A DNA stretch of 64,000 nucleotides, taken from positions 124,001 through 188,000 of the IMG/VR virus record IMGVR_UViG_3300043418_000072, one strand, 5' to 3'. Below the pieces are notes generated by a model, which was not told where the DNA came from, did not search any database, and saw only the letters and a list, made by a program, of their open reading frames with translations. Of the stretch, positions 27,257 through 59,486 are shown one piece after another. Positions within the stretch are counted from its first letter, which is position 1. The number at the start of each line of letters is the position of its first letter. A program made the translations under genes and the position numbers.

Positions 27257-27285
27257 ATTATAGCATAACACCCAATTTAGGTCAA
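27257..27285 (-). promoter_or_regulatory. sigma70-type promoter inside array
   Basis: TTGACC-17-TATAAT; -35 overlaps a TGA stop. Confidence 0.8.
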
Positions 27286-35726: not shown

Positions 35727-35755
35727 ATTATACACTAAATGCCTTTATGCGTCAA
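35727..35755 (-). promoter_or_regulatory. sigma70-type promoter heading W-array 1
   Basis: TTGACG-17-TATAAT. Confidence 0.8.
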
Positions 35756-48753: not shown

Positions 48754-49047
48754 TTATGTCGTTGTAATATTATATATGCCTTTAAGGCCGTCTGTCAATT
48801 CATTTAGACGATCTCGATAGCGAAGTTGTAGATATGTGTACTGCGCTGGGGTAACATTTCTAAACACCACACGATCAAGGTGATGAACAACTCGTTGTTC
48901 GGTTGCCATATCGCGCCACCCACTGTCAAACATACTGGACTCGGGTTTGAGACCATGTGTGTTAACTAGGTCAAAGTCCATATCGGTTTCGTTAAGAAAC
49001 TCTACATCATCTGAATTAAGGGCGTTGCGTAATAAGTAATCAGTCAT
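48754..49047 (-). CDS. W-cassette-like variant
   Basis: YLQLRY; similar to 33725. Confidence 0.6.
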   Translation of the reverse strand: MTDYLLRNALNSDDVEFLNETDMDFDLVNTHGLKPESSMFDSGWRDMATEQRVVHHLDRVVFRNVTPAQYTYLQLRYRDRLNELTDGLKGIYNITTT

Positions 49048-49966
49048 TGAACTCTTCGTACTCGCGTTTTTCAGCGTCAAGTACTTTCTTCATTGCATCA
49101 ATCAGCAGCAAGTAACCTTCAGGTTCTTGTTGTTGGCTACCAGCACCCGATTGTGGGCTCCAGAACTTGCGGGTCTCTAACATAAATCCATCGATCCACA
49201 CGGCTTTGAGGTACTCAGTTAACATCCCTCTAAGACCTTCGCGATCGTTGGCTTCGACATAGTCACAAACCATAAGACTGGGGCGAACCAAACTGCTGTA
49301 ACGATACTCGTCATGTGCTAGCCACTGTGCCGCAGTATTTAATTGAGCTCTTTCTTTGCCTTCGTTGAGAATACGTAGGCCACGCAATGGATCAAATCGG
49401 AATAGATCTTTCTTGCACGATTCAAACAAGTGATCCACACATGCAGCAACGTCTTTAACTACATCAGCAAAGGTGATGTTGATGTAAGCGTCATCCCATC
49501 CACTGGTGCCGTTGTTGGCACCCACATAGCGTTCAACAACACGGTTCTCGATCACGTGATCAAAAACGTCCTTGTGGATCATTACAAATCCCACGTGCTG
49601 GCGCTGGCGCTCGTAGCGACCTTTGATGAACAAGCGACTCTCGTGTACTGCTTCAAAGAACACATCTGCATCAAAGCCTTCGCGTTTGACCGGAATGTCG
49701 TGAAATGTATTCTCTCCCTGTGGCAACTCAACCAGTTCTTCTTTGATAGCATTTATAACCAAGTCAACCCCGAGACCTGTGCAGTCCTCTGCGCCACCGT
49801 AGTCGTTATACTTGGCATAGAACGGCATCATTACTGGTGCGTAAAATGGGGTAGTGTAACAAAGACTGTCCACACCGTTGTTTTTAACAAGTGCAAACAC
49901 AACCACGTCTTGATTGGCGCGAATGTGTAGCTGAGACAGTCCACAAGTTTGATTCCAACATCCCAT
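49040..49966 (-). CDS. Hypothetical protein
   Basis: MGCWNQTC start, YNDYG; AAGGA RBS. Confidence 0.8.
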   Translation of the reverse strand: MGCWNQTCGLSQLHIRANQDVVVFALVKNNGVDSLCYTTPFYAPVMMPFYAKYNDYGGAEDCTGLGVDLVINAIKEELVELPQGENTFHDIPVKREGFDADVFFEAVHESRLFIKGRYERQRQHVGFVMIHKDVFDHVIENRVVERYVGANNGTSGWDDAYINITFADVVKDVAACVDHLFESCKKDLFRFDPLRGLRILNEGKERAQLNTAAQWLAHDEYRYSSLVRPSLMVCDYVEANDREGLRGMLTEYLKAVWIDGFMLETRKFWSPQSGAGSQQQEPEGYLLLIDAMKKVLDAEKREYEEFND

Positions 49967-49980
49967 TTGAGTTCCTTAAT

Positions 49981-50265
49981 TTACTCGTTGTCCAAAATAG
50001 CGAAGATTTCTTCTTCCTTGATTACCAGCAGAGTTTCGCCCTTAACTGTTACAGTAATTGTGGCAGATGGATTGTACATCACGCGATCACCGACTTGCAC
50101 TGTAAGTGGGATGGGTGCGCCATCTTTAACGGGCTTGCCTGTGCCTACTGCTACAACTTCGGCTTCGTAAACCGGAGTTACTGAAGTAGTTAGCATAATG
50201 CCACCTGCGGATTTTGTTTCGGGTTCAAGTTTCTTGATTAGAACTCTGTCGTGCATTACTTGCAT
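49981..50265 (-). CDS. groES: Co-chaperonin GroES
   Basis: HDRVLIK, SAGGI, VVAVGTG, VQVGDRV, EEEIFAI. Confidence 0.95.
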   Translation of the reverse strand: MQVMHDRVLIKKLEPETKSAGGIMLTTSVTPVYEAEVVAVGTGKPVKDGAPIPLTVQVGDRVMYNPSATITVTVKGETLLVIKEEEIFAILDNE

Positions 50266-50280
50266 GTTATTTCCTTATTA

Positions 50281-50394
50281 ACCATAGTTAAGTACACTGC
50301 CGGAGTAGCAAGAACCAACTTGCCCACTTTGTTCCGTCCTGGATAGATTACTCTACTGGTTCCCAGGCAAACCGCTAATGTACTTAACTATGGT
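50281..50394 (-). ncRNA. Structured tRNA 3' trailer closed by a perfect 16-bp inverted repeat
   Basis: ACCATAGTTAAGTACA (50281-50296) / TGTACTTAACTATGGT (50379-50394); internal GNRA hairpin. Confidence 0.6.
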
Positions 50395-50465
50395 GCGCTA
50401 GGCGGGAATCGAACCCGCGATTCAGAGGTTTAGAAACTCCTGCTATACCATTTAGCTACTAGCGC
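50391..50465 (-). tRNA. tRNA with CUA anticodon (amber suppressor), CCA encoded
   Basis: 75-nt cloverleaf GCGCTAG...TT-CTA-AA...TTCGATT...CTAGCGC-A-CCA. Confidence 0.9.
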
Positions 50466-50473
50466 ATTTTGTA

Positions 50474-50502
50474 ATTATAACAAGAGCACTGATGTTAGTC
50501 AA
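50474..50502 (-). promoter_or_regulatory. sigma70-type promoter for the tRNA
   Basis: TTGACT-17-TATAAT. Confidence 0.85.
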
Positions 50503-50517
50503 TGCCCTTGTTGTTCA

Positions 50518-51921
50518 TTATTTCATGCTGTTAGCACGAACTTGTTCGAAAGTGATTTCGTTAAACAATGCACCGTTCTGGAAAACAGTTTGCAATGCTT
50601 CAGTCCAACCACCAATGCCTTTGTCGCTCCAACCAGTAGGGGCTTGCACACTTGTTGAAAACTCGCCACCACTGTTGGTCCACAACTTAACACGGCCTTT
50701 GAGTGATGCTTTGCCACTGTCAGTGATGGGGTCTTTGTAAACATCAACCCATTCACCGTTGACACATGCACTGGAACATTTCATAGCCCACTTCTGTGTA
50801 TCACGATCAATAGCTTGCAGCAAAGCACCACCCATACCAAATGCAAAGTTATCTGCTGACCAACCTTGGAAATCAACCATAGTGCGCAAGATGCTTTGGA
50901 TGCTAACAGTGTTGATACCATCGCCCCAGATCATGCGTACATTGTTGAGTACCTTGTAGCCCTTGTCATTGGTAGTGTATCCAAAGCCTTCTGCAAGAAT
51001 TGCAATCATCTTTGGCATGACTTCAACAGGATCACCTGAGTCAGGACGGATAACAACTGTGGCACCTGAATCAATCACTTGCTGTTTCAAGTCACCAGTA
51101 CTCCACATTTTACATGCTTCGTAGATGTTGTAGCTGTCACTAACAACTGCAACAATACCGCCTGGCTTACCAAACTGTGTGACCATGTTGCTGTAGGCGT
51201 TCAGTTCACCTGCACGACCCCAACTAGTGATAGTACTGTGCTCGGCAGCTGGAATTGAAAAACCTGCGATGCCAGCATTGTAATATTCGCGAGCGTACAG
51301 TACACCAGTAATAGTGTCGGTACCCATGAAGTTGACCAAGTGGGCCGCACCCCCAATACCAGCACTCTCCATTGAAGATACACCACGAGCACCAAAATCG
51401 TGCAGTTTAAAACCGATAGTAGTAGGATCACCAGATTTCTCCAAGTATTCTTGCAAGATGTTTTTAATGTACTTGCTTTGTGTTGAGACTGTAGTTGGGT
51501 ACCAGACTGCACGAAGCAATGGAGTTTCCAACCATGTGGTTAAACCGTGGCACTTGGGGTCAGTGTTTTCGATTGTGACCAGTGCGTTTCCAACTGGGAC
51601 AACAGTGCCTTCTGGTACGGCTTTAATGACCACGGGCAAGTAGCCGTTGTGTGCTTCGACGATGTAGTCCCACATGGTGCGGTCGAATGGTTCGCCGTGT
51701 GCTGTGAGGATTTCTTCTGCGATGTCAACGTCGGCTTTTGTAATTGGGTCAAGTAAATACTCCTTGAAGAAAATTTGCAGTCCAACAACTTGTGTGAATG
51801 TGAATTTGCCGCCGCGGGCTGCAATGTAGCTGAATACATTAGTAGTGCCAGCTGGGTATTGAGGCGCCATACTAACTTTGTAGCTGTCAGTATTGAGAAT
51901 GATGTTTTTAGAGAGTTTCAT
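50518..51921 (-). CDS. nadV: Nicotinamide phosphoribosyltransferase
   Basis: TDSYK, LHDFGARG, AAEHS, VSDSY, IRPDSG. Confidence 0.95.
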   Translation of the reverse strand: MKLSKNIILNTDSYKVSMAPQYPAGTTNVFSYIAARGGKFTFTQVVGLQIFFKEYLLDPITKADVDIAEEILTAHGEPFDRTMWDYIVEAHNGYLPVVIKAVPEGTVVPVGNALVTIENTDPKCHGLTTWLETPLLRAVWYPTTVSTQSKYIKNILQEYLEKSGDPTTIGFKLHDFGARGVSSMESAGIGGAAHLVNFMGTDTITGVLYAREYYNAGIAGFSIPAAEHSTITSWGRAGELNAYSNMVTQFGKPGGIVAVVSDSYNIYEACKMWSTGDLKQQVIDSGATVVIRPDSGDPVEVMPKMIAILAEGFGYTTNDKGYKVLNNVRMIWGDGINTVSIQSILRTMVDFQGWSADNFAFGMGGALLQAIDRDTQKWAMKCSSACVNGEWVDVYKDPITDSGKASLKGRVKLWTNSGGEFSTSVQAPTGWSDKGIGGWTEALQTVFQNGALFNEITFEQVRANSMK

Positions 51922-52003
51922 AATAAAGTTCCTTTATTTAAATTGCCTTAGGTCTATCCTTAGGACTTGCTTACAGTATAACAGTGAACCATTTCATTGT
52001 CAA
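51922..52003 (-). promoter_or_regulatory. nadV promoter and two-hairpin leader
   Basis: TTGACA-17-TATACT; G-ATAGA-C hairpin; SD-sequestering hairpin. Confidence 0.7.
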
Positions 52004-52204
52004 CTATTCTGTTCCGCCAATTTTCTTGGCACGTTGGATACGTTCGTAATCTTCGCGGCATTCCTTTGAGCAAAAAATGCCTTCAGTTGGCTCATCACAA
52101 GACAAGCAGAACCCATTTGATTCTGGAACCGTTTGGCGATTGCGGAGGTTGTTTTGCAACCAAATGTCTGATGCGTTTGCTGCGTCTTCTAACATATCAC
52201 TCAT
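52004..52204 (-). CDS. C4 Zn-finger protein (TraR/DksA-like or Zn-ribbon)
   Basis: MSD..EDA, CLSC...FCSKEC. Confidence 0.65.
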   Translation of the reverse strand: MSDMLEDAANASDIWLQNNLRNRQTVPESNGFCLSCDEPTEGIFCSKECREDYERIQRAKKIGGTE

Positions 52205-52461
52205 TTTTGTACCTTAATTTCTTGGATTTCCGTTGTTGCTTTAAGCGAAGTCAGATACGACATTGGGTATGTACGCTTCCTGCCATTGACGCTGATTTGA
52301 TATCCTGGTTCGACTTTGGTTCCATAAAAGAATCCACCTTTATGGAATGCCATTGGTCGAAGTTCGCCGGTGACTTTAACAGAGTACAGTTTCTCTTCTG
52401 CCACGTTCCAGAAGTAACCTGGGAAGCGTGTTGCTACAAAATCTACAGGTAGTGTAACCAT
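52201..52461 (-). CDS. Hypothetical protein
   Basis: Coupled ORF. Confidence 0.7.
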   Translation of the reverse strand: MVTLPVDFVATRFPGYFWNVAEEKLYSVKVTGELRPMAFHKGGFFYGTKVEPGYQISVNGRKRTYPMSYLTSLKATTEIQEIKVQK

Positions 52462-52679
52462 TATAACTCCACTCTTTCAAAGTAAATCTTGGCAAAGCCC
52501 ATGGGGCTTGTTGCACGGCGTTCAATTTGTAGATACAAACGTGTCGGAGTATCCTCTAACACATGGTGCACCACAATCTGATCCATGGTATCGTTAAACA
52601 CTTGAGTCCTAACTTGTTCAGCTAAGAACAGTTGTTGACTACGCCGGGGTTGATAGTTGCTCTTGTGCATCTTAAACAC
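52461..52679 (-). CDS. Hypothetical protein
   Basis: Coupled ORF. Confidence 0.6.
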   Translation of the reverse strand: MFKMHKSNYQPRRSQQLFLAEQVRTQVFNDTMDQIVVHHVLEDTPTRLYLQIERRATSPMGFAKIYFERVEL

Positions 52680-53691
52680 CTACCGCCCATTGGACCATAT
52701 CGTAGTGGTCTTCAAAACACTCGTCGCTACGCACTTCTGCAATAGGAACCCAACGTGCTTTCTCTGCATCGTCACTGCCTTTTACTTTAGGCAATGCACC
52801 ATCAGGCAATTCAATCTTGTAGCAATGAGTAATGATACGACCACGTGGTGAACGATCAACAGCATCAAACACACGGTTGCCCGTAATGCTACCACGCAAC
52901 ACTGGCTCAGGTACTTTGATACCAGTTTCTTCACGGAGTTCGCGAATAGCTGCATCAAGTACGGTCTTGTCGGTGCTGGCGTTAACGTAACCACCAGGCA
53001 GTGCCCACAAGCCACGACCTGGCTCAGCACGGCGTTTGATCATAAGCACATGGCCTGAGCAAATTACTGCGGCATCTGCTGTGCTAAAGATTGGAGGGTA
53101 CTTCAAGCTGGCATATTGCTTGTTGTGTTCAATCAAGAATTCACGCTCACGGATAATCTGTGCAAATTCCTCAGTCTTACGAAAATTCATCAAGAAGTCA
53201 TAAGTTGATTGAGGTACAACATTCTTAATAAAGTTGCTGTTGAAGGTCCAGTTAAAGAACAGGTCACGAATGTTCACTGCACTAAGTGGTTCAATTTCCT
53301 CTACATCAACATAGCCCCATTGGGGGAACATGTCCAAGTAGAAACTTGATTCGTCTTTCTTGTGACCAATGATGGCAGTTTTAGTACCCAGGATTCGATA
53401 CTTGCTGACAATACCTTGCACACGAACTGCCCACGCTTGGTCGTTGTACATTGTATCAATGTTTTCTTCAATGTGAATACTCATTGCAAGACCACTTGTT
53501 GCAGCCTTAATCATTTGAGCACGTTCGGCACTGGTGAAGGGGTTTTTGTAAGTGCGGGGTTGAGCAGCTGAGCCTGTGATAATTACCAGATTGTCGGTCA
53601 ATGCTGTGGCTCGCTTGATAATCTCTAAGTGAGCATTGTGGAAGGGTTGAAAACGTCCGATGAGGACTAGTGTTCCGTATTCTTTAGACAT
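52672..53691 (-). CDS. nadM: Bifunctional NMN adenylyltransferase / Nudix ADPR pyrophosphatase
   Basis: GRFQPFHNAH, KNPF, Nudix box PGG...RELREETG. Confidence 0.95.
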   Translation of the reverse strand: MSKEYGTLVLIGRFQPFHNAHLEIIKRATALTDNLVIITGSAAQPRTYKNPFTSAERAQMIKAATSGLAMSIHIEENIDTMYNDQAWAVRVQGIVSKYRILGTKTAIIGHKKDESSFYLDMFPQWGYVDVEEIEPLSAVNIRDLFFNWTFNSNFIKNVVPQSTYDFLMNFRKTEEFAQIIREREFLIEHNKQYASLKYPPIFSTADAAVICSGHVLMIKRRAEPGRGLWALPGGYVNASTDKTVLDAAIRELREETGIKVPEPVLRGSITGNRVFDAVDRSPRGRIITHCYKIELPDGALPKVKGSDDAEKARWVPIAEVRSDECFEDHYDMVQWAVGV

Positions 53692-53692
53692 A

Positions 53693-54160
53693 TTAACCTC
53701 GCAATGCTTTGATGTCGGCTTCGGTTAAGCCCAGGGATTTTGCTCGAGCAATGGCTGCTTCTTTGGCTGTTTTTGCTTGCTGTTCAGCCTCAAGCTGTTG
53801 TTCAACTCGCAAGTCTTCCTGAGTGGGCTCAATGACACGAACTGGACCATACCATCCCCGACCGGCGTTGAACAATACTTCTTCTGTCACACGGCTATCA
53901 GTGCCCATGACATAGTTCTTCTTGGCTCGTCGCAATGCGGTGGACTTCTTCTCGCAAAGGTATTGAACATACTCACGTCCGCGACCTTCGGTCAAATCTG
54001 TGTTGGTCCATACTGCATAGACAGTCTGTTGTTTGGGGGTTTCTACATTGAGCTTTTCAGTCAATGCTTTTACGATAGCTTCGACTGCTGGGCGATTTGC
54101 AAGGGGCAATGCCTCACATACTGCGGCAATCATCTCGGGTGATGTGAAATCTACTGGCAT
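53693..54160 (-). CDS. Hypothetical protein
   Basis: TNTDLTEGRG; first gene of nadM unit. Confidence 0.75.
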   Translation of the reverse strand: MPVDFTSPEMIAAVCEALPLANRPAVEAIVKALTEKLNVETPKQQTVYAVWTNTDLTEGRGREYVQYLCEKKSTALRRAKKNYVMGTDSRVTEEVLFNAGRGWYGPVRVIEPTQEDLRVEQQLEAEQQAKTAKEAAIARAKSLGLTEADIKALRG

Positions 54161-54255
54161 ACAAAAATCCTTTGTATAATGTTGAGTACAGAAAGTCTAT
54201 CTCTCTGTATTTTTATTTATGTGTTTATTATAACACCTGATTCTTTATTTGTCAA
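54159..54255 (-). promoter_or_regulatory. nadM-unit promoter and two-hairpin leader
   Basis: TTGACA-17-TATAAT; G-ATAGA-C hairpin; SD-sequestering hairpin. Confidence 0.7.
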
Positions 54256-54443
54256 ACTTTTCTGTAGTCTGCGCGATAGTAGCAGTCAGGATCACCGGGG
54301 TCTTTGTTGTATGCTGCAACAAAATCCTTGGCTTCTTGTTCGTTATCAAACAACTTTTCTCCCATTGGGCGCTGACCATAACCACGCTCATATTCAGTCA
54401 TTGTGACTTTGTACAAGGGACCATTTAGTTTAACTTCTGCCAT
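54252..54443 (-). CDS. Small hypothetical protein
   Basis: EYERGYGQR; GGAG RBS. Confidence 0.7.
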   Translation of the reverse strand: MAEVKLNGPLYKVTMTEYERGYGQRPMGEKLFDNEQEAKDFVAAYNKDPGDPDCYYRADYRKV

Positions 54444-54517
54444 TTTCTGCTCCTTTGGGTTAACTACTTTCTACAGTTTTAGTATAACACTAGAGTCATT
54501 AAAATGCAACCAAAAGA

Positions 54518-54537
54518 AAACCCGCCGAAGCGGGTTT
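54518..54537 (-). terminator. UUCG-loop terminator, identical copy at 59447-59466
   Basis: AAACCCGC-TTCG-GCGGGTTT. Confidence 0.85.
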
Positions 54538-54618
54538 CTAATTAACTCTATAAATCTACGATTTTCCATTAACTTTTCCTATGTCGACAATAGGCCTAAG
54601 GCAAACGGCATATTTGAG

Positions 54619-55587
54619 TTATTGTTTGCTTTTGATTAGTGATTGATGTGCAACCAACTGCTCTCTGAGTTGTGCAAATTGCGGATGCACTAGAATGTCC
54701 AATGCAGATTCAATGCTACGTAACGCGGTGTTGAATAATGCAGGCGCTAGATTGTAAATGGCTAGATATTTTGGACTGTTGGCAGTATGTGCAACAAAAG
54801 TACAGCGGGGATTGTTTTCAACTATCTCAACAAAGTACTTGGCCAACGAGTGTATGTCAACGATTGAGATATTTGTGAGAGTGATATGAAATTTTATTTG
54901 AACTGGCAAATCCACAAACTTAGTAATGTTATCTTGTACTATGGACCAGACTGTGCCCGTACGTTGCAGTTCTGCTGTTCGTCCTACTCCATCAATGCTG
55001 AGATTTAATGTTGTATTAAATTTCAGCAGCTTCTCAACAAATATTTGATTGTACACGCTTGCATTGGTGTAGACTCGCAAGTTAATGTCTGTTCTGTCTT
55101 TAGCTATCAAGTGATCTAGCAACTGATAGTAGTGCTTAATTATCATTGGCTCGCCACCAGTTAATGTAAGGAACTTTAGATTCTCTGACATGGTAAGTAT
55201 CTCGGCCCAGTCAGAATCTGAAACGGTATTAACTGAGCCATTGATGAGAGAGCTGTTTTCGCTATTGCACATCTTGCACTGAAAATTACAAAGATTGCTT
55301 GCTCTCAGCTCCATATAATCGAGTTGGTCAACGGTAGTTTCACCATATAGTGCAAGTAGGTGCTGTCTTATACTTTGCAGCCCTGCGTCTTCTAGTGACT
55401 TGCATCCTCCGCAAGTTTCGTCAAACTCGTTATTTAAAAACTTGGTTTTTAAATCTTTAAGGTAATCACTATTTCTAAACTCTACTGGACTCATGCTAAA
55501 CTTCTTAGAACTAATGCAGCACACAGCCGATTGATCGACATGGTAGAACAAAGATCGCCACGGTGCAGGACAAAAGAATTTTTTCAT
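54619..55587 (-). CDS. Radical SAM protein with N-terminal SPASM/twitch-like Cys cluster
   Basis: CNFQCKMC, TGGEPM, YTN, SIDG. Confidence 0.9.
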   Translation of the reverse strand: MKKFFCPAPWRSLFYHVDQSAVCCISSKKFSMSPVEFRNSDYLKDLKTKFLNNEFDETCGGCKSLEDAGLQSIRQHLLALYGETTVDQLDYMELRASNLCNFQCKMCNSENSSLINGSVNTVSDSDWAEILTMSENLKFLTLTGGEPMIIKHYYQLLDHLIAKDRTDINLRVYTNASVYNQIFVEKLLKFNTTLNLSIDGVGRTAELQRTGTVWSIVQDNITKFVDLPVQIKFHITLTNISIVDIHSLAKYFVEIVENNPRCTFVAHTANSPKYLAIYNLAPALFNTALRSIESALDILVHPQFAQLREQLVAHQSLIKSKQ

Positions 55588-55605
55588 AGAATAGAGTGTG
55601 TAATT

Positions 55606-55631
55606 AGAAAATAGGGGCCGAAGCCCCTATT
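55606..55631 (-). terminator. Terminator after tmRNA
   Basis: AATAGGGGC-TTCG-GCCCCTATT-TTCT. Confidence 0.85.
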
Positions 55632-55632
55632 A

Positions 55633-55953
55633 CTATTTCCTGTTGCAAGGCATAGCTGCCCCGGAAGCCTTTATCAGGCAACCATTAGAAACTGTGAGTC
55701 GTTTGCATTTACTTTTTTTGCTTCTACGGCCGGGAAACCCCAACCCTACGGCTTCTGCTTTGCCGAGCTGTCCACTTGTTTACTTGTTGCCCTGTCGAAA
55801 CCATGGCAGGCCCATCAAAAACATACTAAGCACTTTACACCGATATCGTTTCTTAAGTTCGCCCACGATGTATCGAATAGTACGCTTTTGGTGGACCTGG
55901 CGGGAGTCGAACCCGCGTCCAGAACACTTTTCTCTTTGCTTCATACAGCAATA
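55633..55953 (-). ncRNA. ssrA: Circularly permuted two-piece tmRNA; tag ANDSQFLMVA
   Basis: Acceptor piece ends ...GGGTTCGACTCCCGCCAGGTCCACCA (55889) before coding piece GGGCCTG... (55813); G3-U70; tag 55674-55706; ends approximate. Confidence 0.9.
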
Positions 55954-55980
55954 ACTTATATTATAGCACAAGACTATAAT

Positions 55981-56367
55981 TTAACGACCTGTAGTTGTCC
56001 AATCCAGCACAACTTCATCGGTGGTAGCATCTCGTAATTGGTAACGGCGTTCAATTCCTGATGCTTGCTGAAAAGAAGCAACAGTAGTGGACTCGCCATC
56101 GACATGTGCTTGAGCTTGATTTTCTAACGCCAGTTCGTCGAAACATTTGTTAAACTGCTCAACTGATTCAAACATCATAGTTACTGTAGTGACTACAGAT
56201 CCATCAGGCATGTCAGCTCGTGTAGTGACATTTAACTCAGATCCGGGTGCGCTATACTTTGCAATTATTGCATCACGTGCATCATACACATGCTTGAATT
56301 CCGGGCGGTGTAGTGGTCTAACTGCCCCAGCTGGTGTAGTAATTTCTTTAATATACTTGATCATCAA
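55981..56367 (-). CDS. Hypothetical protein
   Basis: TAAATA at 56384-56389, GGAG RBS. Confidence 0.75.
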   Translation of the reverse strand: MMIKYIKEITTPAGAVRPLHRPEFKHVYDARDAIIAKYSAPGSELNVTTRADMPDGSVVTTVTMMFESVEQFNKCFDELALENQAQAHVDGESTTVASFQQASGIERRYQLRDATTDEVVLDWTTTGR

Positions 56368-56395
56368 ATTCTCCTATATGCTATATTTAGCCAAG

Positions 56396-56427
56396 AGAAA
56401 GGGCGAAGCCAAGTTCGCCCTGTTTTT
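56396..56427. terminator. Intrinsic terminator-like hairpin
   Basis: AGGGCGAA/TTCGCCCT stem. Confidence 0.7.
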
Positions 56428-56440
56428 GCACACTCGCTGA

Positions 56441-56779
56441 TTAAGCTGCGTCTGCTTCAGTTTTAGCTGCGGCCTTGGCCTTGAGCTTTTCCATGCTTGG
56501 CTTTTCTGCTTTGGTCTTTGTGACCTTAACAGTTGCCACGGCGTTGTACTTTGCATCAGCATTGTCAATTGCCTCTTTGTATGCAGCGTTAGCATACAAG
56601 TCTGTTGTCTTAAGGAAAGTAACCAATTCAGGCTTGGTCATCTCATTGGGCAAATCCATTAGCTGGATATCCGTATCTGTCTTTGCCAGAATCTTAACAC
56701 GGGTCATGTCAGTTGCGAAACGCACCTTGTAACCAGATTTGCACTTAGAAACACCACCAACTTTGAACAATTTAGTCAT
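56441..56779 (-). CDS. Hypothetical protein, K/A-rich tail
   Basis: YKVRFATD; promoter TTGACT-17-TATAAT at 56847-56875. Confidence 0.75.
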   Translation of the reverse strand: MTKLFKVGGVSKCKSGYKVRFATDMTRVKILAKTDTDIQLMDLPNEMTKPELVTFLKTTDLYANAAYKEAIDNADAKYNAVATVKVTKTKAEKPSMEKLKAKAAAKTEADAA

Positions 56780-56902
56780 TTGTAAACTCCATTTACGTTA
56801 ATTGAAAAACACACTCTCAATGTAGCCTCATTGCTACAGTATTTAAATTATAGTTGATTTCGAATTATGAGTCAACCACAATTTAAATTCTTTTTGCCCA
56901 TT

Positions 56903-57031
56903 TTACTGAGCCAATTCCTTGCTGTGGGTCTTGACAGAGTCAATGCTCTTGTCCAGAATCCTTGCAACACCGCTGAAGCCAACTGTGGCCACAACCAAAC
57001 CAAGAACAAACCCAATTGCTAAATTACGCAT
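56903..57031 (-). CDS. Small membrane protein (42 aa, not in track)
   Basis: MRNLAIGFVLGLVV... Confidence 0.6.
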   Translation of the reverse strand: MRNLAIGFVLGLVVATVGFSGVARILDKSIDSVKTHSKELAQ

Positions 57032-57033
57032 GA

Positions 57034-57249
57034 TTACTCCTCTACAACTTCACGAATGTCGGACCACGCAGACCATTGCATGTTGCGATGACCTCGGGCG
57101 ATAAAGTCTTGCGACAAGGCATTTGCCTGCGCATAAACTGTCTTGTCTTCCATTTGTCGGTATTGCAGCACACGTTCGTAGACGGTAACAATTTTTGTAC
57201 CGCTGAGTTTGCTACCAATTGGGCGTTTAAGCCAGCGCATTTCCATCAT
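57034..57249 (-). CDS. Hypothetical protein
   Basis: MEMRWL...VLQYR...WSDI. Confidence 0.65.
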   Translation of the reverse strand: MMEMRWLKRPIGSKLSGTKIVTVYERVLQYRQMEDKTVYAQANALSQDFIARGHRNMQWSAWSDIREVVEE

Positions 57250-57368
57250 ACCATGAATCCCCAAACAATAATGTTCATACCAATAAACACACCAAGCAAG
57301 AACACACTTACCTTTTCAAGCATTATGCTGCCTCCAACATGTTAGCTGGGAACAAGATAAATAAATAC

Positions 57369-57977
57369 ATGTTTAACTCCAGTAAATACACAAAAATTTA
57401 TTATAACATAATCAAACGAGCTTTTTCAAGATCGATAATTGGTTATACCGAAAAACACCACATCATCCCACGAAGCATTGGTGGCAACAACAAACGATCT
57501 AACATTGTAGCCCTGACTGCAAAAGAACATCGTCTTTGTCATTTGCTGTTGACTAAAATGGTTATTGATCCAGCGCATAGAAGTTCTATGTATCGTGCAG
57601 CTTGGTTCATGAGTAACCGAGTTTTGTTAGGTGTAAGCAAAGGATCATGCTATCAACAATTAAAGGAAGAGTTTGACAAACTTAACCGATCTCGTGTAGT
57701 TACTAACGAAACAAAACAAAAAATACGAGACAAGCGAGCACTACAAACAAACATATCTAACCAATACCTTTCAGGTAAATTAACTGAGTCGCCTCGCAAA
57801 GGAATACCAAATAAAAAGACTTCAGACGCACTTGCTGGACGAGTTATAACTTGGGGAGAAAAACTGTCTGAAACTGCTCTTACCCGTACTAAATGTTCGT
57901 GCATAAAATGCAAAAAAGTAGTTACAGTTGGATACAATGGAGACCGTCACTTTCTTACTTGTTTACTCAACCGCTGA
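57369..57977 (+). mobile_element. Free-standing HNH homing endonuclease with NUMOD3-like tail
   Basis: EKHHIIPRSIGG.N..SN...LT.KEH..CH; ATAAATA at 57357-57367; opposite strand to neighbours. Confidence 0.85.
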
Positions 57978-58241
57978 AAGCATGTTAGCTGGAACGTTCC
58001 AGTTCAGCGTACCGTTTTCCAGAACAGTCACGTTCTTGATCTTAACTTTCTTAACCACACCGTAATGCACCGCACGGGTTTTAGGATGTGTAAACTTAAC
58101 CTTGGTACCAATGACCAAGCTGCCTGTATTCTTGTGAATCATTTGAGCACGTACAAAACGGATCGCATCACTGATGTTATTCAGTTCGTCGTTAGTGTAG
58201 TTGCTAGCGATAATTGCACGGGCGATTTCAACAGCTTGCAT
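57963..58241 (-). CDS. Hypothetical protein (SH3-like)
   Basis: GTKVKF, WNVPANML; promoter TTGACT-17-TATAAT at 58272-58300. Confidence 0.75.
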   Translation of the reverse strand: MQAVEIARAIIASNYTNDELNNISDAIRFVRAQMIHKNTGSLVIGTKVKFTHPKTRAVHYGVVKKVKIKNVTVLENGTLNWNVPANMLSAVE

Positions 58242-59408: not shown

Positions 59409-59486
59409 ATAGACATTATACGCCCGAAATCGTTTTTGGTCAAGAGAAACCCGCCGAAGCGGGTTTGTGATCTCTGTACATTGAGT

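Follow-up and report, generated by a model that had tools for sequence, protein, structure and literature searches.

Regulatory question raised by the two NAD-salvage units

The DNA analysed was a 64,000-nucleotide window (positions 124,001 to 188,000) of IMG/VR record IMGVR_UViG_3300043418_000072, the 354,098-bp genome of a freshwater phage. On its minus strand lie two gene units for the rebuilding of NAD+, one encoding NadV/NAMPT and the other NadM-Nudix, and each unit starts with a similar two-hairpin leader. This raised the question of whether the two leaders represent a chance resemblance or a shared regulatory RNA that coordinates the two units. The initial annotation had proposed the latter, as either a protein-binding site or a small riboswitch, with differing stems, an identical G-AUAGA-C loop and a second hairpin hiding the RBS. 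All coordinates and letters were checked on the minus strand and the observation was found to be correct, with one correction: the leader assigned to the nadM unit precedes a 155-aa ORF and not nadM itself, NadM-Nudix being the second gene of that unit. The features of the locus are as follows.

54250-54255, minus strand: -35 hexamer TTGACA of the nadM-unit promoter, found by a promoter consensus scan of the whole genome.
54227-54232, minus strand: -10 hexamer TATAAT of the nadM-unit promoter, with a 17-nt spacer and a predicted start site near 54220.
54187-54209, minus strand: first hairpin (H1) of the nadM-unit leader, UACAGAGAG / AUAGA / CUUUCUGUA, a 9-bp stem with one G.U and the loop G-AUAGA-C.
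54159-54177, minus strand: second hairpin (H2) of the nadM-unit leader, AUACAAA / GGAUU / UUUGUAU, a 7-bp A/U-rich stem which holds the Shine-Dalgarno sequence and, in its 3' arm, the AU of the AUG (54158-54160).
53693-54160, minus strand: orf155, first gene of the unit, function unknown, with no Pfam or PHROG hit and only hypothetical proteins as matches in a protein atlas; homologues sit behind the same leader in three other cases.
52672-53691, minus strand: NadM-Nudix (NMN adenylyltransferase plus Nudix domain), 339 aa, Pfam PF01467 (2.2e-14) and PF00293 (4.6e-21).
52004-52679, minus strand: three small ORFs (72, 86 and 66 aa) between nadM and the nadV promoter, not conserved in other cassettes; the 66-aa ORF (orf66) is a DksA-like zinc-finger protein (phrog_54, 2.1e-6).
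51998-52003, minus strand: -35 hexamer TTGACA of the nadV promoter, directly after the orf66 stop codon and also found by the consensus scan.
51981-52000, minus strand: inverted repeat inside the nadV promoter spacer, ACAAUGAA / UUCACUGU, a hairpin that would exist only in transcripts reading through from upstream.
51975-51980, minus strand: -10 hexamer TATACT of the nadV promoter, preceded by TGT (extended -10) and a 17-nt spacer, with a predicted start site near A51968.
51946-51964, minus strand: H1 of the nadV leader, CCUAAGG / AUAGA / CCUAAGG, with 3+3 base pairs around a central A.A mismatch, loop G-AUAGA-C, flanked by the conserved AAGU and CA; the two arms are also a direct repeat.
51922-51938, minus strand: H2 of the nadV leader, AAUAAAG / GAA / CUUUAUU, a 7-bp stem with the Shine-Dalgarno AAGGA in its 5' arm and loop, the AUG (51919-51921) following directly.
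50518-51921, minus strand: NadV/NAMPT (nicotinamide phosphoribosyltransferase), 467 aa, Pfam PF04095 (7e-56) and PF18127 NAMPT_N (7e-22).

The two leaders within the phage genome

Folding energies were first used to ask whether the leaders stand out as single sequences. The nadV leader was not thermodynamically remarkable (-7.7 kcal/mol, z -1.15), while the nadM-unit leader was (-13.6 kcal/mol, z -3.94), its H1 alone giving -9.6 kcal/mol (z -4.34). The H2 hairpins are weak, their energies of -2.3 and -4.5 kcal/mol falling in the 32nd and 10th percentile of 242 gene starts of the genome. In contrast, genome-wide scans showed that only these two hairpins in 354,098 bp have a G-AUAGA-C loop, and a covariance model of H1 (R1) found exactly these two sites even at E up to 10, with 32.0 bits for the nadV leader and 31.4 bits for the nadM-unit leader (E about 5e-6 and 8e-6). 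The AGGA-centred 6-bp palindrome occurs 12 times in the genome, against 6.8 in shuffles, and only the two NAD leaders abut the AUG of a long ORF. The decisive evidence, however, was comparative.

Conservation and covariation of H1 and H2

Homologous leaders were collected from IMG/VR phage contigs and aligned. RNAalifold on a MAFFT alignment of full leaders recovered only the three inner H1 pairs, because the linker was misaligned, and anchored gap-free alignments were used instead. In 67 distinct leaders the seven loop letters of H1 never change while the stem covaries, the two pairs next to the loop being paired 134 of 134 times, as AU, CG, UA, GC and 13 G.U, with no A.C. The covariation score was 0.468 against 0.146 in shuffles (0 of 500 shuffles reached it) and at most 0.136 with slid partners. 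H2 covaries even more strongly, with AGGA invariant at the tip, 94.7% of cells paired, a score of 0.759 against 0.198, and 25 G.U with no A.C. The inverted repeat in the nadV promoter spacer also covaries, in 40 distinct promoters, with 27 G.U against 8 A.C.

The arrangement of the two hairpins was then examined. The H1 loop lies 25-31 nt from the GGA and 33-41 nt from the AUG in both leader classes, despite different stem lengths, whereas its distance to the promoter varies: H1 can sit 4 nt or more than 40 nt from the promoter, or, in four cases, inside a polycistron with no promoter. A split nadV carries the leader before each half. H1 and H2 co-fold in 68 of 72 leaders. H2 is, however, kept in nadV leaders that lack H1, so H2 can work without H1.

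Association with NAD-cassette genes and distribution

In eight other phage records of 208-365 kb, all R1 hits of 26 bits or more lie in the NAD cassette, while additional hits of 14-22 bits in other phage genomes lie inside coding sequence with no leader features. The pattern AAGTCC-N4-GATAGAC-N4-GGCA gave 105 IMG/VR stretches; of the 81 matches inspected, 77 have 6-7 of 7 stem pairs, with 35 distinct stems among all 81 matches, and wherever the downstream ORF could be read it is a NAMPT-family gene. A second, gene-blind pattern gave 52 stemmed hits, nearly all followed by NadM-Nudix, NadV or small ORFs of the same unit, while the 26 stemless hits had no such context. The element recurs in at least about 100 uncultured phage contigs, and the possibility that the loop is not enriched upstream of NAD genes is clearly excluded.

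Outside these phages the element is almost absent. The strict nadV-type pattern gave 55 hits in 185,579 prokaryote species genomes, a number we estimate to be close to chance, with only one true site, on a 5.6-kb MAG contig. R1 on 151 genomes drawn from the taxonomic order of an Acidovorax genome gave 7 hits at E<=0.05, about the number we would expect by chance, and none in a leader context. Two cultured relatives, Ralstonia phage RsoM2USA (closest NadV, 58.7% identity) and Acidovorax phage ACP17, have no H1 anywhere in their genomes, although RsoM2USA does keep an H2-like RBS hairpin. No family of Rfam 15 covers the leaders and no description of the motif was found in the literature. The proposal of a new regulatory RNA motif linked to the two NAD-salvage units was therefore supported, the leader being a real and apparently undescribed element.

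A probable translational operator

The best explanation, which we hold with moderate confidence, is a conserved, phage-specific, two-part 5'-leader RNA element that co-regulates the NadV/NAMPT and NadM-Nudix units after transcription. The anatomy favours a protein-bound operator over a riboswitch: a simple hairpin whose only invariant letters are in the apical loop, no conserved internal loop, junction or pseudoknot, and hairpins that co-fold rather than exclude each other. H1 is probably the operator for a sequence-specific RNA-binding protein that reads the loop, and the same protein is inferred to act on both mRNAs, where by binding next to H2 it would set how easily the 30S subunit can open H2, giving either repression or, in the manner of Mu Com, activation. 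The factor is probably phage-encoded. The only proteins common to all cassettes are NadV and NadM-Nudix themselves, so autogenous control, possibly modulated by their substrates, is the simplest version, although binding by NadV or NadM is pure inference.

The search for another reader of H1 gave no supported candidate. The small ORFs behind the motif (105-109 aa, 116-118 aa, 124 aa and 155 aa) are mutually unrelated. A macro-like protein is enriched in motif-bearing cassettes (38 of 50 against 3 of 30) but is missing from three complete motif-bearing genomes, and orf66 is not conserved in other cassettes. No CsrA homologue was found in the genome; searches for RegA and RegB also found nothing, but their controls were recovered in no control genome, so that absence is not shown.

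A reason for tight control can be envisaged from the pathway itself. Nampt and NMN adenylyltransferase encoded together in a phage define the NARP2 NAD+ reconstitution pathway, which lets phages rebuild NAD+ and escape Thoeris, DSR, SIR2-HerA and SEFIR defences, but which consumes PRPP and overproduces NAD+, and the KVP40 operon was toxic in E. coli (bioRxiv 10.1101/2024.02.11.579819). The Pfam domains of NadV and NadM-Nudix meet this definition. A dedicated RNA element conserved in front of both enzymes suggests that expression of the pathway is deliberately tuned and co-ordinated, and offers an experimentally small handle, a hairpin with a 7-nt conserved loop. It would add a phage-specific family to the catalogue of cis-regulatory RNAs, and a compact orthogonal RNA-protein pair if the binder is found. 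A more speculative possibility, which we regard as unlikely on present evidence, is that the leader is the sensor arm of a phage counter-defence circuit, H1 being read by apo-NadV or apo-NadM-Nudix, or directly by a small ligand, with translation of both NARP2 units staying low until host NADase immunity raises nicotinamide or ADP-ribose, or lowers NAD+. Expression of a costly, PRPP-draining pathway would then be coupled to actual NAD+ depletion.

Alternative explanations

A minimal riboswitch, in which the leader itself binds an NAD-related metabolite (NAD+, NMN, nicotinamide, ADP-ribose or PRPP) and changes how accessible H2 is, could be envisaged but seems unlikely. The gene association is typical of a riboswitch, with both steps of one pathway behind the same leader and an RBS-holding hairpin as expression platform, no trans-acting factor was found in the cassette, and the H1-to-H2 spacing is fixed. 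However, only seven letters are invariant, all in a 5-nt apical loop closed by G-C, and the stem interior is freely paired or mismatched (columns 8-10 paired in 51-69% of sequences). There is no conserved junction or internal loop, and inspection of the alignments revealed no consistent loop-to-linker pseudoknot across the H2 sequence classes, pairing of the loop with the 3' arm of H2 working for some H2 classes only. H1 and H2 are not mutually exclusive, no Rfam riboswitch model matched, and the motif is, but for the single site noted above, absent from the bacteria searched, unlike known metabolite riboswitches.

A passive mRNA stability or processing element appears equally doubtful. Here H1 would protect the 5' end from decay dependent on RNase E or RppH, or be the recognition site of a nuclease, with H2 merely throttling translation and no regulated binding involved. 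In the commonest nadV arrangement H1 does start about 4 nt from the predicted 5' end, AAGU can pair with AYUU after the stem, and H2 persists without H1. In contrast, a stabiliser needs a stem and not a loop sequence kept through NadV divergence down to about 62% identity, H1 also occurs far from the 5' end and inside polycistrons, and its distance to the GGA, not to the promoter, is what is conserved.

A transcription-level element, that is a boxB/nut-like or put-like antitermination site loading a phage factor onto RNA polymerase just after the early promoter, is very unlikely. A promoter-proximal hairpin with a 5-nt loop and covarying stem does resemble what is probably the form of lambda boxB, and read-through transcripts must cross the hairpin in the nadV promoter spacer. 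The loop AUAGA is, however, not GNRA-like, the stems are 7-11 bp rather than 5 bp, no boxA-like word was present in any of 72 leaders, and H1 tracks the RBS rather than the promoter. No U-run of 5 or more follows H1, the longest T-run within 10 nt being 1-4 nt, and 4 nt in only 5 of 72 leaders, which is also not the pattern of an intrinsic terminator or attenuator. Finally, a DNA-level site, either an operator for a regulator of the NrtR, NadR or NiaR type or a recombination site that moves the cassette, is the weakest alternative since, although the element lies next to promoters and travels with a cassette that looks mobile, its conserved core is asymmetric while the arms vary but stay complementary, it is always in the sense orientation between promoter and AUG, and the tolerance of G.U but not A.C (13 against 0 in the inner H1 pairs, 25 against 0 in H2) points to a folded sense-strand RNA.

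Comparison with known systems

One parallel is offered by the autogenous translational operators of T4-type phages, such as the gp43 DNA polymerase operator hairpin and the gp32 and RegA targets, in which a phage protein probably reads a short hairpin with a sequence-specific loop and a covarying stem, just upstream of or overlapping the Shine-Dalgarno sequence. Here, however, one loop sequence serves two different mRNAs, and H1 is separated from the RBS, which has its own conserved hairpin. In Mu Com/mom activation, a small protein would bind the upstream of two adjacent hairpins and thereby open the downstream one, which hides the Shine-Dalgarno sequence and start codon, but no Com homologue was identified. 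PyrR in Bacillus pyr leaders, a precedent for NadV acting as the reader of H1, is probably a phosphoribosyltransferase-fold protein that binds a conserved hairpin loop in the leaders of several units of its own pathway, under nucleotide and PRPP control; PyrR, however, appears to act by transcription attenuation through an anti-antiterminator, its loop sequence probably differs, and NadV is a type II phosphoribosyltransferase for which nothing here shows RNA binding. As regards CsrA/RsmA sites, H2 presents A-GGA at the tip of a 6-7 bp hairpin over the RBS and the nadM-class H2 (ACAAAGGAU...UGU) resembles what is probably the SELEX consensus, while the upstream H1 loop carries AGA and not GGA.

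NAD+ riboswitches of class I (nadA motif) and class II (pnuC motif) are likewise cis-acting leaders of NAD metabolism genes, and class II also hides the RBS, but a cmscan of window positions 49000-58000 at E<=1 and of each leader alone at E<=10 gave no NAD riboswitch hit, the leaders lack the bulged tandem domains or pseudoknot of these classes, and the motif is found in phages and not in bacteria, the one MAG site excepted. The only near hit in Rfam, RF03084 DUF2815 RNA, is also a phage leader motif (of SSB genes) and matched weakly through a UAGAC word and the RBS region, with 20 bits against a gathering score of 41.2; its central 31-nt hairpin is replaced by 11 nt, UAGAC is unpaired in that model, and the downstream gene here is NadV. 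Finally, the PeSL promoter-stem-loop cassettes of T4-like phages (PMC2839356, PMC4122927) combine sigma70-like early promoters with a stem-loop repeated through the genome, and the nadV promoter carries a covarying hairpin in its spacer, although this is A/U-rich and lies inside the promoter. PeSL stem-loops are G/C-rich terminators next to promoters of many ORFans and are not gene-specific, while H1 and H2 are downstream of the promoter, specific to NAD genes and not terminator-like.

Genomic context of the two NAD units

The virus record analysed here (354,098 bp, 43.5% G+C, CheckV 100% complete) is a jumbo phage from a freshwater metagenome. The genes around the two leaders lie on the minus strand, and in transcription order a radical-SAM protein, a terminator-like hairpin and orf63 are followed by the two NAD units. 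Unit 1 comprises a promoter, the leader, orf155, NadM-Nudix and three small ORFs of 72, 86 and 66 aa. Unit 2 starts right at the stop codon of the last of these, orf66, and comprises a promoter, the leader, NadV/NAMPT and then a tRNA. NadV plus NadM is the NARP2 NAD+ reconstitution pathway, which phages use against NAD+-depleting defence systems (bioRxiv 10.1101/2024.02.11.579819). The features of the region, in window coordinates, are as follows.

55608-55998, minus strand: phage-borne tmRNA gene (Rfam beta_tmRNA 110.2 bits, E 1.6e-33; tmRNA_permuted 110.9 bits), hinting at a betaproteobacterial host
54619-55587, minus strand: radical-SAM protein
54511-54545, minus strand: terminator-like hairpin (CCCGC-UUCG-GCGGG followed by a U-run), then a TTGCA-N17-TATACT promoter for orf63
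54252-54443, minus strand: orf63
53693-54160, minus strand: orf155, first gene of unit 1
52672-53691, minus strand: NadM-Nudix (PF01467 and PF00293)
52004-52204, minus strand: orf66, a small DksA-like zinc-finger protein (phrog_54, 2.1e-6), not conserved in other cassettes
51981-52000, minus strand: inverted repeat of 7-8 bp between the -35 and -10 hexamers of the nadV promoter
50518-51921, minus strand: NadV/NAMPT (PF04095 and PF18127)
50394-50465, minus strand: tRNA gene directly downstream of nadV (Rfam tRNA, 66.7 bits)

The initial annotation had described two-hairpin leaders on both units, with an identical G-AUAGA-C loop on differing stems and a second hairpin hiding the RBS, and reading of the minus strand gave exactly this. 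Each leader follows a near-consensus sigma70-type promoter, TTGACA-N17-TATACT for nadV and TTGACA-N17-TATAAT for the nadM unit. The first hairpin, H1, has the loop G-AUAGA-C in both leaders but on unrelated stems, the nadV stem being CCUAAGG/CCUAAGG with a central A.A mismatch and the nadM-unit stem being UACAGAGAG/CUUUCUGUA with one G.U. The second hairpin, H2, is A/U-rich and carries the GGA of the Shine-Dalgarno sequence at its tip, with the AUG sitting directly behind it (nadV) or partly inside it (nadM unit). Energetically, only the nadM-unit leader stood out (z -3.94 against -1.15 for nadV), and the H2 energies were ordinary for this genome. A single-sequence view therefore could not settle the matter.

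The promoter scan of the genome also revealed features beyond the NAD units. Many early promoters (TTGACC-N17-TATAAT) are followed by a nearly identical short leader (CAUAGCAAGCAAAACAGGAG, then AUG), constituting a repeated promoter-leader cassette, while other consensus promoters have an ATG only 5-7 nt after the -10 hexamer, suggesting leaderless mRNAs in this phage. More tRNAs sit behind consensus promoters elsewhere in the genome. The positions within the window, all on the minus strand, are listed below.

About 9489, 12204, 12443, 43134, 47959, 58272, 58664 and 59153: repeated promoter-leader cassette
27257-27285, 35727-35755 and 59415-59443, and others outside the window: promoters of suggested leaderless mRNAs

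The inverted repeat inside the nadV promoter spacer covaried across phages in an alignment of 40 related promoters (87% of cells paired against 67% in shuffles; G.U 27 against A.C 8). It would be an RNA hairpin only in read-through transcripts from the nadM unit, and is reminiscent of PeSL promoter-stem-loop cassettes, but lies inside the promoter.

Comparative analysis of H1

NadV relatives were found in 155 IMG/VR stretches, of which 80 loci were fetched. About fifty nadV leaders carried H1 with the same loop and different, complementary stems, examples being CCUAGCG/CGCAAGG, CCAAGCG/CGCCUGG, CCUAGAG/CUCUAGG, CCUCGUG/CAUGAGG and GUUCGGUG/CACUGAAC. A second leader class, located 2-2.5 kb upstream, carried the same loop on 8-11 bp stems of yet other sequence, some of them with a 3x3 internal loop. 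In a gap-free alignment of 67 distinct 31-nt sequences, anchored on the loop, G-A-U-A-G-A-C was invariant, although rare loop variants exist at individual loci (GAAAGAC in L037 and L072, and a final G in L075). The two pairs next to the closing G-C were paired in every sequence, occurring as AU 33, CG 25, UA 5, GC 2 and UG 2 at one pair, and as GC 50, GU 11, AU 4, CG 1 and UA 1 at the other. The covariation score was 0.468, against 0.146 in 500 shuffles, none of which reached it, and at most 0.136 when partners were slid. G.U occurred 13 times at these two pairs and A.C never; the folded molecule is therefore the sense-strand RNA and not duplex DNA. In the DNA run of the source metagenome, a co-occurring strain carried, at window 51939-51966, H1 with the compensatory stem CCUAGAG/CUCUAGG in place of CCUAAGG/CCUAAGG, and assembly unitigs broke exactly at the hairpin, with a loose end at 51939.

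The specificity of H1 was then assessed with a covariance model (R1), which found only the two NAD leaders in the phage's own genome, even at E up to 10. When eight further phage records of 208-365 kb were scanned, every hit of 26 bits or more lay in the NAD cassette, with one to three sites per genome, while the few hits of 14-22 bits lay in coding sequence without leader features. A strict nadV-type pattern of 17 fixed letters hit 105 viral stretches. Of 81 matches inspected, 77 had 6-7 of 7 stem pairs, and the 81 matches carried 35 different stems. Wherever the downstream ORF could be read, it was a NAMPT-family gene, including very divergent ones. In two of the loci, L115 (4133-6865) and L178 (932-1655), nadV is split into two ORFs (N-terminal 233 aa, C-terminal 225-249 aa), and the C-terminal half in both loci, and the N-terminal half in L115, is preceded by its own H1+H2 leader. 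A second pattern, which fixes only the loop and an H2 word and is blind to the gene, returned 78 unique matches. The 52 with a stem were nearly all followed by NadM-Nudix, NadV or small ORFs (105-109, 116-118 or 155 aa) that head a NadM unit, whereas the 26 without a stem had no such context. In loci L002 and L004, three units carry the motif, namely a 108-aa ORF, nadM and nadV.

Conservation of H2 and leader geometry

An alignment of 59 distinct RBS regions, anchored on GGA and including nadV genes without H1, was used to analyse H2. In this alignment 94.7% of cells were paired, three positions switched freely between AU, UA, GC and CG, and the score was 0.759 against 0.198 (0 of 500 shuffles reached it), with 25 G.U and no A.C. 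In the phage's own genome, this architecture at the start of a long ORF occurs only at nadV and orf155. H2 is kept in nadV leaders that lack H1, and in the cultured Ralstonia phage RsoM2USA, and is thus an older or independent feature of nadV translation starts.

The centre of the H1 loop lies 25-31 nt from the A of GGA in both leader classes, mostly 25-29 nt, and this holds although stems differ by up to 4 bp and linkers are unrelated. In contrast, the distance to the promoter is not conserved, since H1 begins about 4 nt from the predicted start in most nadV leaders and 10-12 nt from it in the nadM class, lies behind an extra 5' hairpin in loci L048, L054, L070 and L113, and lies inside a polycistron directly after nadM in L012, L036 and L132. 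H1 and H2 were both predicted with probability above 0.5 in 68 of 72 leaders, so that they co-exist rather than alternate. No U-run follows H1, and no boxA-like word is present. These facts point to action at translation initiation, and not at transcription start, termination or 5'-end protection alone.

Distribution and expression

On a quick maximum-likelihood tree of 66 NadV proteins, H1 was present on both sides of the midpoint root, the H1-less genes were nested among H1-bearing ones, and starred branches forced at least 7 changes. One clade of ten losses corresponds to nadV fused directly behind the preceding gene. The nearest cultured NadV genes, in RsoM2USA (58.7% identity) and ACP17, have no H1 anywhere in their genomes. 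In 185,579 prokaryote species genomes the strict pattern gave 55 hits, a number that we estimate to be near chance, of which only one is genuine, on a 5.6-kb contig of a MAG with nadV behind it. A search with R1 of 151 genomes drawn from the taxonomic order of an Acidovorax genome gave only chance-level hits. The motif is therefore phage-specific as far as searched.

A freshwater metatranscriptome run holds contigs identical to the window from 50643 to 54447, across both leaders, but none upstream of 54447, just downstream of the terminator-like hairpin and orf63 promoter, where a DNA run covers everything. Although contigs cannot show starts or levels, this fits transcription entering from the orf63 promoter and running through both units.

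Possible mode of action

The two conserved RNA hairpins show an invariant loop, fixed spacing to the RBS and exclusive association with NAD-cassette genes in phages. We are highly confident that this is a functional RNA element specific to NAD genes. That it works as a protein-read translational operator is only somewhat more likely than not. The loop is inferred to be a recognition site, and a 5-nt loop on a plain stem, with no other invariant unpaired letters and no alternative fold, suits a sequence-specific protein better than a metabolite pocket. The same loop on two or three mRNAs would give co-ordinate control. The cost and toxicity of NARP2 (bioRxiv 10.1101/2024.02.11.579819) give a reason for tight control.

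Because the element is missing from bacteria as far as searched, the single MAG contig apart, its reader is more likely phage-encoded than a host factor. Within plus or minus 5 kb, the only proteins common to all cassettes are NadV and NadM-Nudix. A protein of about 160 aa (L002:3556-4044 and homologues, cluster c11), with macro-domain-like sequence features but no Pfam hit, lies between nadM and nadV in 38 of 50 motif-bearing loci against 3 of 30 others, but is absent from the motif-bearing genomes G000, G001 and G161. Thus this macro-like protein fails as a universal partner, as do the small leading ORFs and orf66. Other cassette cargo includes a nucleoside 2-deoxyribosyltransferase-like protein and an AAA ATPase downstream of nadV. 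No CsrA homologue was found in the phage genome, and RegA and RegB homologues were not found either, although the control searches for those two families detected nothing in any control genome.

Comparison with known systems

Autogenous control by one of the two enzymes appears to have precedents in T4 gp43 and in PyrR and is therefore the simplest concrete, though hypothetical, model. Binding might either repress, by blocking 30S entry or stabilising H2, or activate, by opening H2 in the manner of Mu Com. No Rfam 15 family matched the leaders, and no description of the motif was found in full-text literature searches, from which subscription journals were largely absent. Translational operators, and riboswitches, which remain a possible alternative, are known kinds of element, while this family of cis-regulatory leader RNA, its loop and its association with phage NAD+ salvage and reconstitution genes appear to be new. 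On sequence and predicted structure, it is not a member of the NAD+ riboswitch classes, the DUF2815 RNA, nut sites or intrinsic terminators. H2 alone looks like a CsrA-type site, but H1 lacks the GGA.
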